This document shows, piece by piece, positions 45,875 through 53,200 of a stretch of DNA of 64,000 nucleotides (position 1 is its first letter; each line of letters starts with the position of its first letter). The notes under the pieces were generated by a model. It worked only from the letters and a program-made list of their open reading frames with translations. It was not told the DNA's origin and did no database searches. The position numbers and the translations under genes were made by a program. Origin of the DNA: Selaginella moellendorffii (taxonomy: Eukaryota; Plantae; Lycopodiophyta); contig NW_003314330.1 in NCBI RefSeq assembly GCF_000143415.4, positions 310,001 to 374,000 of the forward strand. The letters are read 5' to 3'.

Positions 45875-47273
45875 ATGGATCCGAGATGGAGGAGGAGGAA
45901 GAAGAGTGTTGTTGGATCCAAGTTTGGGTTTCGTGGTTTTTTCTATCTTCTGCTAGGCCTGGGATTGATGGCGCTACTACCGATCTTCTTCTACAGCCGC
46001 TTGAATCAAGTAAGGAAGTTTGTGACAAAATGTAGATCATCAAAACTTTGTTTCGTTTTGCTATAGGAAGGATCGAAAGAATGCGAATGGATAGAGAAGC
46101 CTCCGCTAGTTTGTGCTCACGGTGGTGACACCTCAAGAGCTCCTCCCAACACTGTAAGAATTTCTTTTCTCACTTCATCTGGATCTATTGTTCCATTTCT
46201 TCTTTTCATCTATGACTTTATTTTCTTACAGCTTATAGCTTACAAGCTTGCTCTAGATGCTGGAGTCGATTGCATGGAGATTGACGCATCGCAGACCAAA
46301 GATGGAGTTTTGGTGGCCTTGCACGACAGGTAAGCTTTCATCTTATGCTTTGCAACTTAAATAAAAAACCATTTTTTCTTTTGTTTTGGTTTCATTTTCA
46401 GAGAGCTGAACGACATGGCTAACACTTCTGGCCTTCGTGTTGGTGATCTCACCTTTGAACAGGTGCAAATATTGTTTCTTCGATTGGAAAGCTTTGTTCT
46501 TAAACTATTTCTAGTTCCAGATTCAAGAGCTCAATGCTGCTCGTGGCTTTCCTGACGAGTTTCAAGGCCAAAAAGTCCCAAGCCTCGATAACGCGTTAAG
46601 AGTGAGTAATTCTCTTGTTCACTTTTGTTTTCTAGCCTCACCTTCGTGCAGTATGTTTCCAGATTCCTCAAACATGTCGTAGTCGATGTCAAAGTTGGGC
46701 CGTCGCTGCGTGCAAAAGATCTTGCAGCTGAAATCAAGTCCACGGTATTACAAGTTTCAATTTAAGCTGGTGCTTTTCTTATAAAAACATCTCTAAACAG
46801 GTGGATAGAACTCACTGCAGGAATTGCATCGTCTGGTCAAAGGTAGACGACGTCGTTCGTTCCTACAAACGTGAATCACAAGCATTGGTGAGACTAAACT
46901 CCATAAGAAGAAAAAAACTTGGAAATCACTCTGCTTGTTATTGTTTCAGGCAGGCTACATTGTCATGGACACCCAAAAGATGAGAAAACCTCTGAGGATA
47001 AGCTCCGCCACCGTGGTTGGAGTTTTCCATGGGCTCATGGACAAAAGATTGGTTTCTACAATTCACAAGTGCATATAGTCTCTCTTGAAAGTTACCATTT
47101 TCTGAAGTTTCCATTTTCGCAGGGCCGACAAAGTGGTCTATGCCTGGACTGTGAACGAAGAAAACGATATGGTAAAAATGCTTCATCATGGTGTGGATTG
47201 TATCATCACCAGCCAACCGCGTTTACTCCAACAAGTCATGGAGCGAGAAAGATCAAGCTGCCAATTCATCTAA
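45875..47273 (+). CDS. GDPD4: Glycerophosphodiester phosphodiesterase GDPD4-like; multi-exon
   Basis: N-terminal TM; PPLVCAHGGD..PPNT; CMEIDASQTKDGVLVALHDR; VYAWTVN..GVDCIITSQP. Confidence 0.88.
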
Positions 47274-47524
47274 GATCAATCACTTGTTTACTTCGATTTT
47301 TTTTCATGGCCAAAGAAAGAAGAGAACGAAAGAATGTATCGAAAACCAAAACGATTCGTTTGTACTTCTTAGCTATTGTACAGATGGTCAATCAATCTCT
47401 GTGTGTCTGTGTGTCTGCGTGTGTCTGCGAACACAACTAAAAGCTAGATAGCACTGGTTAGAACAAAGTAAGTTTTGCGACTCCACCAACAAACCGAGAG
47501 AAGCGAGCGAGAGGAGAGTTTTCT

Positions 47525-50269
47525 TCACATAGTGATCTCCTCCAAGTCGGATGCCGATGGGTCGACTTGGTTGCTCCCGTCCGCGCCTTCCGGGAGCTCC
47601 GTGTCTGTAATCTCTTCGTCGTTGTCAGTGTTGGCTTCCTCGGCATCGCTGCCACCACCTCTCCCAAACTCCGGGTGGTGGTGCTCTCGAGTCACCTTCG
47701 TGAGCTCCTCCTCCATGGGGCCTTCCGAGGCCATTTCGTCCATGTCCATGGCACAAGCCTTCACGTTCCTAGAAACGCAAACGCGATGACAATGTGTGTC
47801 TCACGAGAAGCTTAGAACTGTACCTTGGCTGGTTTAGATTTAGAGTGTGGTTTTGTGGGATGGTCGATCCCTTTGACGTAGGCGCCATGTATCTATACCA
47901 CGACCTCAGGGTCTTGGCACTGATGTTTTGGTGACAGAACCACACCTGGGAGAAAAAGAAAGATGTTTTGAGAGCTTAAAGCTTTTATAGAAAGACTTAC
48001 ATTCGAACGAGGCTTGCTGATTGGCGTTAGAAACAATCGCCGCGGCTCGTCCTCGATGGGCTTGGATGGCAAATGCATGTAGTACTTATCCAGGCATTCG
48101 ACGACGTCCAGTTCGAAGGAACGGACGATTTCTCGGAAAACTTCTTTGTTTTTGAACTTCATTGCCCGGCGTTCGTCGTATCTGTGTCGTGTCAGTGAAC
48201 GTCACTACGATAAAAACATAGCAGACGACTTACTCCCAGAAAATGTTTCCTTTCTCGTCAGAACTCCGGCGAAACTCAAGGTCGGTGGTGTCATACAGCT
48301 CCATGTAGCCAAATATTCGAAATCTGTGAATGAGGTAGTAGCAGAGCCGCCTGGCCAGACCATGAGCATGCGTCGTCTGATTGGCAGGATGATGCAATAT
48401 GTCCTCTTCAGATGCAGGGCCCCTGTCGTTTACTCTCCTCTTCTTTGCACTACCTCCGTGAATGATGCTGTATTTCATGGCCTCTAAACATGCTAGTCGA
48501 GCCTTCTCGAAGATGATATCCTTGCTTGCATCAACAGTAGGCCCGTCGTACTTGCCTTGCAAATAGAGTGATCTGTAGTGAGAGCGCAATATCCGAACAA
48601 AAGCCCGAAACATACTCTTCAAACTGCCCAAGAAAACCACGATTGTCTAGGAACAAGAGCAATGAAGCTACCTTTCAGAAGGAAACAAACTCCCGTTGCG
48701 TTTCTTCACCATGAGAAAGAATTTGACCAGGCTATCAGCAAACTCGTTCAACGGCATATCTTCTATCTGCTTTTCTGGCAAACCTTGCTCTTTTCGCCAT
48801 TCCATGTAGTGGCGCCTGCAAAAAAGAAAAAAAGGAAAAAGCGCTCTAAACACCACGCGGAAAGAAGAAAATGAACTAACCTGGCCCATGTCATTACACC
48901 AGAGTTTACTTCCTCGGAGTTTTCCACTTTACGTTTGTCGCCCACAAAATTGAGCATTTCCGAGCCCAATGGACTGCATGCAGCAGATTCTAAAGGCCCA
49001 GGTGTTAAAAGCGCGTCATCCTTCCTATCAGCCATATGACTCTCACCAATAATCCCTTCCTCTTTCTTGTCGGAAACTGCAGAAGTTTAAGAAGTATATG
49101 AGTCCCGGACGATTGCAAACAGTTTAGTTGAGAGCAACCAAGCAAAACTTTCGACATACGACCTGAATGCACACTTGTATACGACTTCTCCTGGTATCTA
49201 CCTTCTACTTTGGTGGTCCTCCCATAGCGATTAGCTGCCGCAAGCTTCAAAGCCGATGAACGAGTAGAATTGACTCTTCCTTCGCTACAGTTGATAAGTG
49301 ACCTGGATGGCTTGTTACAAGAAAACTGATGCGGTTAATAACCAGACCAGCCTCCTAGTAAACTGATCCTCCTACCTGAATAAGCGTCGCCAGAGGAGGA
49401 GAAACATCAGGCCGCCAGTTTGTAGTTTTACTCGAGATGAAGTGAACGGAAGTTGGCTTGCCCTGTACAACAGCATCTAGTACTTTGGCACATTTTTCCT
49501 GTAGGACGCAACACTCACGTAAACCATTGAAATAGTCAGCTAGACACACCTTTTCCTCCTTCAAAGCTCTCTCGAGATGAGAAATCTGACCCTTGGCTGC
49601 AAAACAACAAGGATAAGCTATTATTCCACGAGGGGAAGCTATTTTACCATGCATAAGTGAGTCAAACAGCTCCCAGGCGAGAGTTCCCATCGTATCGTTT
49701 GCGCAGCGTCCTTGAGAGAGTTCCAAGTCGAGGGCAACCTCTCTGGCTGCCCCGTGCACATTGATCCAAGTCTTTAAGCGCGCACAGGAAGCACCTACAC
49801 GAGAGAAAAGTACAGAGAGTTACGTAACACGTAAAATTCAATCGCGCACCTTCTCCTCCCACAGCACTAGCTGGTCCTCCCAGCTCGACTTTAACTTTGC
49901 TCGATGAAAACCCATCGTGCAAGCCTTGAAGATACGTGGTAAATCCATCCTTGATGCCAATCGACTCTTTCTGTATCCATGAAGATCACGATCGCGATCA
50001 AACAAAAAAGAAAAAGGAAAGAAGCTCACCAGATTATTGAGGTACTCGCAAGTGAAGCTCCCGTGCCAAGTGTTGTAGTGAAAATCCGAGGTAAGGACAT
50101 GCAAGTGCCCGGAATTGGAAGGATGGATGTAGAACAAGAATGGCATCAGTGCCGCATTGCGTGCGTGTGGAGAAGCCGGATCAAGCTGGCCCTGCGCCTT
50201 GTTGCAAACTGCCCTAAAGCCGATGAGAGGGCAAGGCTCGCCATCGTTCTCCATGATGTGATCCTCCAT
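47525..50269 (-). CDS. Predicted multi-exon fusion: XRCC4/XLF/PAXX-like head and coiled coil, Crypton/DUF3504 recombinase-like domain, acidic tail
   Basis: Phase-consistent GT-AG exon chain from ATG 50269 to stop 47525. N-terminal PFLFYIH..LHVLTSDFHYNTW..LKESIGI..TMGTLAWELF. C-terminal LVKFFLMVKKRNGSLFPSESLKSM..RLFLTP..WFCHQNISAKTL..NHTLN. Confidence 0.72.
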
Positions 50270-53200
50270 GCCGCTCGCAAAATGCTGCTCCAAATCCCTC
50301 ACATTCTTGTCCTGGATTCCGATTCACGACAAACCTCACTCTGCGCAATGGCGCTGCGAGCAGCGCCGGGCGGACGATTCTTGAGCGAGGCGAGGAGATT
50401 GTGATTGCGATTCCCTAGGCGTGCCGCAGCAATCGGTAGCGACGATCCAGAGCGCCTCAGCACCTCCATCGCTTCTTCTTGTGCTCGAGCCCTAGCGCCA
50501 AACGAAAAATACCCAGGTCCCTTGTCATCTCGATCCAACGGCTCTCACAACCCTAATTCCGGAATCGGAAGCCATGGCTGCTGGCCATGGCTAGTCCTTT
50601 ATCTCCTTTGGCTCGCCTTCGCCGATCCCAGCCGTTGGATCATCTTACTCTTCCGGAAGACCGAATCCCAACCATCCACAATATTATGGTTTCTCATGCA
50701 ATTAGGTTTTCTTGTAAGTTGTTAAAAGGAATATGTAGTTGCACTCTAAACTTACTAGAAAGAAGTATTTACTCATATGCAAAGGTAAGGTAAAATTATA
50801 TGTCTTTCATATTTTTTGATTTTCAGTCTTTATTTATTTTTGTGTTTATTATTTTTTGTTGTTACTTTACCTAGCTAGGGTAATACATATATATACATAT
50901 ATATATTTACAAACCTTACAAGTTTATTTTTTTATATTCTTTCTTTATTATTGTTTCTAGCTTTCAACCACATAGAACCCAAATTAATATCCTTTAATTA
51001 TTTTTGTGACGTAATACATTCAAAAATATATATATATTTAATTATGGAAAAAGTAAATATTAAAATTATCCCTTATTAATAATATTTAAAATAAAAAATA
51101 TTTAATTTATTGCAGATTTTAAAAAATAGTTTAACTCAATAAATCGAGTACTTAATATTTTAATGAATATCATATACTCAATAAAATTAATTTATATAAG
51201 TTATTTATAACTAAGGGTATTTATTGCAAAATAATTAAATATAGATTCTATTAAAGTTAGAAATTAGCAAAATAATTAAAAGATATGAACCTTAGTTACA
51301 TGGTTATATATAACTTTAAATTGTAATATAGTTCTTTGCATTATCATGCAATTTTTCTTAATAAACTATTAAATATTAATATTTAATTTATTATAGATTT
51401 TAAAAGTAGTTTAAATCTATAAATTATTTTAATAATTTTATAAATACCATATGTATTTATTTAGTATAATTAGTTTATATAAGTTTTTGAACAATTAGTC
51501 TTTAGTGTACTTGTAAACTTATTTTCTTAATAATATTAATAAACTACAATACTAAAAATAATAGATAAACTTATAAATCATAATAAAAATTTATAATATT
51601 AAACTTACATCGCACAAATTAAAATAGTCATATATTTTATATTTATTATACACTTTCTAAACAATATACTAAGCTTAAAATAATTTCAGGCTAAATCTAT
51701 ATTCAGTTACTGAATACTAAATATTTTTTATTAATAAAATAAAATAATTATCATTAATATACATAGTAGAGTTTGTAAATACATATATGTATACACATAT
51801 ATTATTTTGCCTAGGTAATATATTAATTATAGTACTAAAGTATATGGACTATCTATTTGAGATTGAATCTAATCAATCTATTCTTATATATATCTAAACC
51901 CTAATTAATATACTTATTCTTGGTGAAAGTGAGGGACACTACAATTTGTCCTTGAAGAGCAAAGTATTTTAGCAATGCTTTGCTCAAGTGTTTGGGATTC
52001 TTGTTTTTATTCTTGTTTCTTCATTCTTTTTAAATTTAAATTGTTATTAACTATTTGTAAGATCTAGAATTTTAGATATTACTGTGTTTAAATCTATTCT
52101 TTCTTCTGATCTTCATTGCATTCTCTTCTCCCACCATGTTACACCATTATTGATTAAGGAATGTCACTTAAGGCTGCTAATATTGCTTCATTAGATCGAA
52201 CTTTTAGTGTTGTAAAGTGTGATAATGTTAGTGTTGCACCCATTCTTGGTGTGTTATCATCTCTAACTTTTGTGGAATGTGATTACACAATTTGTTCTGT
52301 TCTTGGTGTTCTGCCATCTCTTGTTAATATGGAGTATAATTGTGACATTAGGCGAGTTACGGATGATGTAGTTTAGTTTTTGGAGAATGTTCTAGGATCA
52401 AATTTATGGAAAGGCAATGTGTATGAGCTTAAGTGGATTTTATATTGTTTTAACAAGCTTAATTATTATGAAGATAGCTTTGGAGATGAAGTGGAAATTT
52501 CATAAAGTAAGTGTCAATCCTTCAATCTACTATTTGATCATTTCTTTTTACCTTCTACTCTTTTTTAACCTTTTTTTATTTTTCAACTTAAGCCACCTTA
52601 TCATGTTTTTAGTATATTTTTCTCATTTGTAGTGTTTTCTTTTCCTAACACATCGATCATTTGTGACTCTCATAATTCTTATTTTCAATCTAGTGTTGAG
52701 GTGAGTGTTTTATATCTTCTTCATACTAATCTAAATGTTATATATATGCATAAAGTTGAGAATCTTGCTTTTGTTTCATTAGTAGAGTCTTTGATTAGTT
52801 CTAGCATTAAGTATTCCCTGTTCCAAAAGTTAAATCACTTTGGCTAAAGTTTTAATTTGAGTGCATATCCCTAATTGTGAGTACTATTGATAACCTTTGT
52901 TTTATTGTTGTTATTGAGGAGTTTATGTGTTCTTTTGAGAGTGTAAACATTTCTATGAATTTTCTTGTTTCAAGTGTTGAGTTATGTGTTGAAGAGGTTG
53001 AACAGTATGAATATTTTTTTAATATTATAGTGGCCGAAGTATTTTATGATAGAAAGTCTCTTATTTTCTAAACTTTGAGCACATATGTTTCTTTTGATTT
53101 TCCTATTTCTGAATTGCTAATTATTTTAAATTCTTTTTCTAATGCTTCTTTATCCACTTTTTCTTATTCTACAATGGTTTTTTTCTCAATTCTTTTTGTT

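Follow-up and report, generated by a model that had tools for sequence, protein, structure and literature searches.

Results

A single expressed gene carries both halves

This report concerns LOC9653486, a minus-strand gene in a stretch of 64,000 nucleotides from Selaginella moellendorffii (NCBI RefSeq assembly GCF_000143415.4, contig NW_003314330.1, positions 310,001 to 374,000; hereafter the window, to which all coordinates refer). A reading of the bare sequence (the sequence-only reading) had traced a frame-consistent exon chain here, and had taken it to join an XRCC4/XLF/PAXX-type head to a recombinase domain that has lost its catalytic residues. Our splice model, covering 47300-50600, comprises 12 exons with GT-AG borders at all 11 introns and an uninterrupted open reading frame (ORF). 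The coding sequence (CDS; 50269-47525, minus strand) measures 2064 nucleotides (nt), equal to 687 amino acids (aa) and a stop, and its ATG is preceded by an in-frame stop 22 codons upstream. A phmmer search with exon 9 returned a protein of 700 aa (P0001, 99% identity), the RefSeq entry "uncharacterized protein LOC9653486 isoform X1" of S. moellendorffii; the model supported by RNA is isoform X2 (P0041, 687 aa), XP_024515378.1, to which our CDS is identical.

Evidence that the two halves belong together came from Logan RNA contigs of four runs, aligned to window positions 46800-51200. All 11 junctions are contained within one single contig in each of two runs from two different studies (2236 nt in run X2 and 2114 nt in run X3), the contigs of these runs extending from 47583 to 50499/50562. 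Because the junctions that tie the halves to each other – 49076>49202 and 48814>48880 – fall inside these single spliced contigs, both halves reside on one mRNA: LOC9653486 is one expressed gene. A split into two genes near 49.0-49.3 kb was not seen across 49376-48881, and the exon chain of the sequence-only reading is upheld, with ten of the 11 introns placed exactly. The eleventh differed by 15 nt, in frame, the acceptor of exon 6 lying at 49310 and not at 49325. Two donors had been offered for the same exon: the RNA contigs use 49202, while 49163 occurs in RefSeq isoform X1 and was not seen in the two junction-spanning contigs of runs X2 and X3. The peptide motifs that had been quoted, among them FRIFG, NHTLN and an acidic tail, are all present in the translated CDS. 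Sampled words of the 3-kb stretch were present at a share of 0.60-0.65 in 16 runs from five studies (RNA status guessed from run records), which fits a spliced mRNA; run X1 gave no contig aligned to the region despite an index share of 0.65.

LOC9657420, the copy on the second haplotype, has two residue differences, both within disordered parts, and a paralogue, LOC9657615/LOC9650439, is 48% identical; the UniProt accessions are D8SQN0/D8RT87 for the gene and D8SC65/D8T155 for the paralogue. All four CDS variants in the Selaginella RNA contigs are synonymous. The contig of run X3 shows 10 differences from the window in about 170 nt of 3′ untranslated region (UTR; 47116-47285) and three, all synonymous, in about 2 kb of CDS; it probably represents the other haplotype, with the CDS under selection.

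The N-terminal half is a PAXX-type head with a coiled coil

A profile of 11 orthologous N-terminal halves (N-halves) matched the 238-aa sequence of PDB entry 8p26, "Crystal structure of Arabidopsis thaliana PAXX" (AtPAXX), over residues 29-171 (E 3.5e-16, 62.7 bits). The molecule name deposited with that entry is 'U2 small nuclear ribonucleoprotein auxiliary factor-like protein'; the UniProt accession of AtPAXX is F4KC77 (Khan and Ochi 2023, bioRxiv 10.1101/2023.05.26.542399). An AlphaFold2 (AF2) model of the N-half, with a predicted local distance difference test score (pLDDT) of 75, consists of a beta-sandwich, into which a pair of helices is inserted, and a helix of 47 residues. In Foldseek the chains of 8p26 rank at the top (E 4.5e-9; template-modelling score by target 0.84-0.86), followed, in the Foldseek and VIA matches, by SAS-6, CCDC61, XRCC4, PAXX and XLF. 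The top AlphaFold-DB clusters are stand-alone proteins of 255-307 aa; lower in that list stands L8H683, the Acanthamoeba PAXX of Khan and Ochi (2023). Language-model leads, unlike the Pfam models considered below, likewise point to XRCC4/XLF/PAXX. The identification of this half as a superfamily head with a coiled coil, made earlier, is therefore borne out by profile, model and Foldseek.

Identity to AtPAXX is roughly 30% (by eye, from the printed alignment) or 18-21% (Foldseek), against 45-54% across the fusion family, lycophytes to gymnosperms. When the N-half alone was used in a word-indexed search, no stand-alone relatives came up, a result that is little informative given that the method requires shared 5-mers. 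A literature search for At5g64010, the unconfirmed Arabidopsis Genome Initiative code of the protein to which the sequence-only reading had likened this half, found no paper. One loop of the head, the Gly/Ala-rich L-G-G-P-A-S-A-V-G-G-K-G-A (aa 111-123; 49787-49880), is near-invariant in the fusion family, of low confidence in the model and different in sequence in AtPAXX; it may be a family-specific interaction loop.

The C-terminal half adopts a recombinase fold

In the AF2 model of the C-terminal half (C-half; pLDDT 87) a short basic linker connects a helical lobe to an alpha/beta lobe whose fold stops past the helix preceding the H-x-x-R position; the most conserved stretch, LVKFF.MVKKRNG.LFPSESL, sits in the helical N-lobe. 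Among AlphaFold-DB Swiss-Prot structures the top 12 matches are KIAA1958 (E 1.1e-10), ZMYM2, QRICH1, ZMYM3 and ZMYM4, with Xer recombinases coming after these 12: precisely the animal DUF3504 proteins to which this half had been likened are its nearest structural neighbours. Neighbours in the ESM-Atlas are PF12012 clusters, some also with Phage_integrase, and include probable mollusc Cryptons; language-model leads also favour a recombinase-type identity. A C-half profile run against PDB sequences gave only a weak hit to homeodomain-only protein, which is probably spurious, and no Pfam hit of the full-length proteins pointed to an origin from a plant ALOG-type domain.

The label DUF3504 holds in one sense and fails in another. 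Fold and nearest structures agree with it; the Pfam gathering score for DUF3504 (PF12012), 29.7 bits, is reached by no plant member. There is no hit for P0001; the scores are 15.7 bits for P0003, the Selaginella paralogue, and 24.0 bits for P0010, a relative lacking the PAXX head, and the other relatives have no DUF3504 match. By fold and sub-threshold similarity the C-half is a DUF3504-like sister family and not a member of Pfam DUF3504. To go by its resemblance to DUF3504 and to probable mollusc Cryptons, it may descend from a Crypton rather than from DIRS/Ngaro or another recombinase. The green alga Chlamydomonas harbours active Cryptons (PMC9977147), which makes a green-lineage source plausible.

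The catalytic residues are lost in the fusion and largely kept in head-less relatives

Alignment A3 places F, Y, H, N or D at the position of catalytic Arg I in the fusion clade. In all fusion orthologues the conserved sequence ends at W-Y-R-x-M; what follows is unconserved, acidic and of low confidence, and the segment with H-x-x-R, His and Tyr is absent. The complete catalytic set (Arg I, Lys, His-x-x-Arg, His/Trp, Tyr) is therefore not found, and the loss claimed from the Selaginella sequence extends to the orthologues. With Arg I replaced and the H-x-x-R, His/Trp and Tyr segment missing, the protein, to judge from its sequence, cannot carry out recombination or strand exchange.

An exhaustive protein search also uncovered plant proteins related to the C-half but without a PAXX head, with 26-32% identity over both lobes: Marchantia polymorpha Mp5g04240 (named 'DUF3504 domain-containing protein' in UniRef), three genes of Calypogeia fissa, Adiantum GOP47_0013896, Diphasiastrum O6H91_04G128000 and unnamed sequences. 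In the C-half tree they are sister to the fusion clade, with which they share the N-terminal helix GG.N.S...W...F..W and the SAM-like motif. Unlike the fusion, most keep Arg I – in the context F-x-I-R-G-G-x-E-L, with one W, one K and one Y as exceptions and one row gapped – and most retain N-K-S-x-R at the H-x-x-R position, followed by T-G-H-K...Y-x-R-Y, over which P0010 and P0030 have weak, sub-threshold Phage_integrase hits. Across this head-less land-plant family (P0010, P0013, P0030-P0033, P0015, P0009 and P0007) Arg, His and Tyr are kept and Lys replaces the His of H-x-x-R; the three Calypogeia copies are diverged, and the single Marchantia gene is present in M. paleacea too. These sequences may be active elements or a second domestication.

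Between the two halves of the fusion runs a disordered linker (about 110-125 aa) with a conserved S-L-K-L...N-S-Y-x-R motif. The recombinase-like module is basic, with an isoelectric point (pI) of 9.5, while the segment that follows it (aa 588-687, decayed stretch plus tail) has a pI of 4.2. The last eight residues of the tail, S-D-L-E-E-I-T-M, are a motif common to the aligned lycophyte and gymnosperm orthologues (alignment A5).

Descent and selection

Full-length fusions of named origin were recovered from Selaginella (two genes), Diphasiastrum, Adiantum, Pteridium, Taxus and Cryptomeria, and many further transcript contigs of other species, some with full-length fusion ORFs, group with ferns or conifers. 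Neither the exhaustive search (20 hits) nor the word-indexed one (13 hits) brought up a fusion from an angiosperm or a bryophyte. A maximum-likelihood tree built on the C-half unites the fusion proteins (support 100/100) in a group with a topology like that of the species tree: lycophytes stand apart from gymnosperms and ferns, which group together (94/94), and Selaginella's two genes come out as a pair (82/91). In Diphasiastrum the orthologue occupies 11.7 kb as one gene, and its exon boundaries, located by tblastn, fall within a few residues of the Selaginella intron positions; the positions of five introns within the recombinase-like module are common to both. Orthologues are single or low copy. 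Our data show that the fusion arose once, before the split between lycophytes and euphyllophytes, and was inherited vertically in lycophytes, ferns and gymnosperms.

Ratios of nonsynonymous to synonymous substitution (dN/dS, method of Nei-Gojobori) were obtained for two pairs of transcripts, one conifer-like and one fern-like, the values here being given in that order: 0.23 and 0.13 for the N-half, 0.08 and 0.07 for the C-half, 0.49 and 0.26 for the linker, and 0.42 and 0.37 for the tail. Both folded halves are under purifying selection and the C-half is the most constrained part. In its descent along the species tree, its introns and the purifying selection upon it, LOC9653486 behaves as a host gene, in line with the earlier suggestion that the recombinase was domesticated. 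Cryptomeria japonica also has LOC131060753 (P0093, P0094, P0096, P0097), with proteins of 192-281 aa that fall in a 90%-identity cluster with the Cryptomeria fusion and look like partial duplicates on another contig.

Features of the locus and its neighbourhood

The coordinates of exons and protein segments are collected in Table 1.

Table 1. Parts of LOC9653486 in the window (residue numbers of isoform X2)
Feature	Positions	Strand	Evidence
Transcribed span: 5′ leader, 12 exons, 3′ UTR	47116..50562	-	RNA contigs reach 50562 (5′) and 47116 (3′)
CDS exon 1, aa 1-80, ATG at 50269	50030..50269	-	junction 49970/50030 in runs X2, X3; frame
CDS exon 2, aa 81-120	49850..49970	-	RNA-contig junctions; frame
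CDS exon 3, aa 121-169	49648..49794	-	RNA-contig junctions; frame
CDS exon 4, aa 170-185	49550..49596	-	RNA-contig junctions
CDS exon 5, aa 186-226	49376..49498	-	RNA-contig junctions
CDS exon 6, aa 227-262	49202..49310	-	joints 49310>49376 and 49076>49202 in runs X2, X3
39 nt added to exon 6 by alternative donor 49163; 13 extra aa in RefSeq isoform X1 (700 aa)	49163..49201	-	P0001 compared with P0041
CDS exon 7, aa 263-327, joins the two halves	48881..49076	-	joints 49076>49202 and 48814>48880 within single contigs
CDS exon 8, aa 328-375	48672..48815	-	RNA contigs
CDS exon 9, aa 376-505, query of the exhaustive protein search	48234..48623	-	RNA contigs
CDS exon 10, aa 506-566	48001..48181	-	RNA contigs
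CDS exon 11, aa 567-606	47824..47945	-	RNA contigs
CDS exon 12, aa 607-687, TGA at 47527-47525	47525..47768	-	frame; RNA contigs
PAXX-type head, aa 12-148: beta-sandwich with inserted helix-turn-helix	49712..50236	-	AF2 secondary structure; 8p26 matches
Long helix, aa 150-196, predicted dimerising coiled coil	49466..49708	-	AF2 helix; dimerisation predicted from XRCC4-superfamily structures
Conserved linker motif, aa 244-257, consensus S-S-L-K-L-x3-N-S-Y-x-R	49218..49259	-	L, K, L, N and Y invariant in 10 orthologues
Helical N-lobe, aa 308-430, core-binding/SAM-like equivalent	48461..48942	-	AF2 helices, pLDDT ~90; Cre aligned over both lobes
Basic interlobe linker, aa 431-445, contains KKRR	48416..48460	-	low pLDDT at model residues 134-138; conserved basic patch
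Alpha/beta C-lobe, aa 446-587, first part of tyrosine-recombinase catalytic domain (DUF3504-like)	47883..48415	-	
Phe480 codon, at the catalytic Arg I position	48311..48313	-	alignment A3
Decayed unconserved stretch, aa 588-610, contains NHTLN	47759..47882	-	alignment A3; pLDDT <50
Acidic disordered tail, aa 611-687	47528..47758	-	alignment A5

The 5′ leader contains an upstream ORF of 56 codons (50299-50469, minus strand, ATG at 50469) that is out of frame with the main ATG, is covered by RNA contigs and has no Pfam match. Downstream lies a convergent glycerophosphodiester phosphodiesterase gene, whose last coding piece (47133-47273, plus strand) matches Pfam GDPD with an E of 1.1e-5, above the cut-off. 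One RNA contig covers 47116 to 47770 without a break, so the two genes may overlap at their 3′ ends; the 3′ contig piece may merge with the transcript of this neighbour. A short CA/GA-rich simple repeat occupies 47388-47427 of the 3′ UTR and was passed over as a repeat in the alignment of the RNA contigs.

Discussion

The protein combines parts that have each been met before. AtPAXX is a protein of 236-238 aa whose C-terminal tail (L228) binds Ku and whose head binds XRCC4, with stimulation of ligation (Khan and Ochi 2023). In AtPAXX the Ku-binding tail stands at the end; in the fusion the coiled coil leads into a long linker, then a module of some 280 aa derived from a recombinase, and then an acidic tail. 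Closest in kind to that module are the animal DUF3504 proteins (KIAA1958, ZMYM2/3/4, QRICH1 and an isoform of KCTD1), which derive from Crypton tyrosine recombinases (Kojima and Jurka 2011, PMC3212892). With these the fusion shares the two-lobed recombinase fold, which gives the best structural matches, the loss of the catalytic tetrad, the end of the module at about the same place, a place in conserved host genes and the union with unrelated host domains. It differs from them in falling below the Pfam threshold, in having lost Arg I as well, in that its closest sequence relatives are plant and not animal, and in its partner: an XRCC4-superfamily head is reported for no DUF3504 protein in the literature that we found. 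Trypanosomatid XRCC4-like proteins, which carry a C-terminal phosphodiesterase (noted by Khan and Ochi 2023), set a precedent for joining such a head to a C-terminal domain of nucleic-acid-enzyme type, albeit in another lineage and with an enzyme that is possibly active. A more distant match is Ndc10 of the yeast CBF3 kinetochore complex, which uses an inert tyrosine-recombinase fold for DNA binding and is unrelated to the fusion in sequence and context.

The sequence-only reading had known of no such architecture, and no searchable paper that we found describes a fusion of PAXX-like and recombinase parts. Literature searches returned nothing linking PAXX with DUF3504 or Crypton, except a review that names both separately, and no description of a DUF3504 domestication in land plants, the known cases being animal; the main text of the PAXX preprint does not mention the fusion (Khan and Ochi 2023). 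What is new about this domesticated recombinase is its partner and the kingdom in which it occurs.

What such a protein does is the central issue. The explanation that we favour, and hold to be probable if far from assured, is that the single gene encodes a dimeric, non-catalytic adaptor for DNA or a protein partner, preferably acting in double-strand-break repair as a paralogue beside stand-alone PAXX. The N-half would dimerise like other XRCC4-superfamily proteins, and the dimer would present two basic recombinase-derived clamps serving as binding modules for DNA or a partner protein. In the preferred setting the PAXX-like head would, like that of AtPAXX, contact XRCC4, and the clamps would tether DNA or chromatin. 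A binding role is favoured because the animal DUF3504 precedents work as binding modules without catalysis: the DUF3504 of ZMYM3 binds RAP80/ABRA1 and is required for accumulation at breaks (PMC5358723), ZMYM2 likewise acts at breaks, and QRICH1 is seen with a zinc-finger factor on DNA, according to the title of PDB entry 9hjt. That the protein would work beside canonical PAXX, most likely as its paralogue, is suggested by Table S2 of Khan and Ochi (2023), which gives D8RQ89 as the Selaginella PAXX and lists a fern accession also, whereas the fusion gene and its paralogue carry other accessions; on this basis, which consists of accession numbers only, the fusion is probably a PAXX paralogue and not canonical PAXX.

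Several points weigh against this explanation. Pfam models of PAXX (PF15384), XLF (PF09302) and XRCC4 (PF06632) find no match in the full-length proteins (E<=1), and single exons gave no Pfam hits, these three models included at E up to 10. The AF2 models of both halves were built on shallow alignments (11 and 20 sequences), the paralogy to canonical PAXX is argued from accession numbers, and the absence of the fusion from angiosperms and bryophytes comes from sequence searches of limited sensitivity. Profiles of the linker motif and the C-terminal motif have no match in full-length AtPAXX, its Ku-binding tail included, which for motifs so short is a weak test. As neither motif detectably resembles AtPAXX, a link to Ku is unsupported, and the idea that one of them is a Ku-binding motif of AtPAXX type was dropped, no AtPAXX match having appeared in PDB sequences, although it may yet hold, as short motifs are poorly detected by such profiles. 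The animal DUF3504 proteins are mostly transcriptional co-regulators, and both the end-joining role and the function suggested here are putative.

Indeed, the same animal proteins invite a different reading, in which head and coiled coil serve only for oligomerisation and the protein has a role in transcription or chromatin that is unrelated to end joining. The parallel is with DUF3504 proteins that pair a dead recombinase with BTB (KCTD1), CARD (QRICH1) or MYM zinc fingers; co-regulators are what the C-half most resembles in structure, and this half is under the tightest constraint of any part. No counterpart of the AtPAXX Ku-binding tail can be recognised in the fusion, and a separate canonical PAXX seems to be present in Selaginella, which would free the fusion copy for a new role. 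We consider this co-regulator reading rather unlikely, if one to be taken seriously; what stands on the other side is the PAXX-like head itself together with the DUF3504 proteins that act at breaks. A bolder version of the end-joining adaptor is more doubtful. To our knowledge, plants are without XLF, and the fusion could be a dedicated factor bridging DNA ends or junctions, a PAXX paralogue with two dead-recombinase clamps per dimer, gated by the acidic tail, that replaces synapsis by XLF filaments; we attach only a slim likelihood to it. Were it true, it would be a domesticated-transposon answer, in non-flowering vascular plants, to the synapsis role of animal XLF filaments.

Two further alternatives fare worse. 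The N-half has PAXX-type similarity, and the fusion was not found in angiosperms, whose protein stands alone at about 240-300 aa. This could mean that non-flowering vascular plants have in the fusion their canonical PAXX orthologue, and that angiosperm PAXX arose from it by losing the recombinase half. This is improbable in view of the other accessions that Table S2 names for Selaginella and a fern, and of an N-half so much less similar to AtPAXX than to its counterparts within the fusion family. Least credible, to the point of being negligible, is an artefact or mobile element – adjacent genes merged in the model, or a Crypton-type transposon, active or decaying, lying beside or capturing a PAXX gene – in favour of which there is only the recombinase ancestry of the C-half. 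A merged-gene artefact was rejected on the single spliced contigs that span both halves. An active transposon was rejected as well: catalytic residues are missing, copy number is low and descent is vertical along the species tree, and to this are added the five introns inside the module that are shared with Diphasiastrum and strong purifying selection.

Plant PAXX was recognised only in 2023 (Khan and Ochi 2023), and it meets here, in a single protein, the theme of the domesticated recombinase. The dead recombinase module is the most constrained part of that protein (dN/dS ~0.07), which argues that it does an important job without catalysis. It represents a second, seemingly independent recombinase domestication to set beside ZMYM, QRICH1 and KIAA1958. 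The angiosperms, in which the fusion was not detected, offer a natural experiment; in ferns and gymnosperms the protein is a candidate for an extra end-joining or chromatin factor, and as such it bears on transformation and genome editing in these plants.

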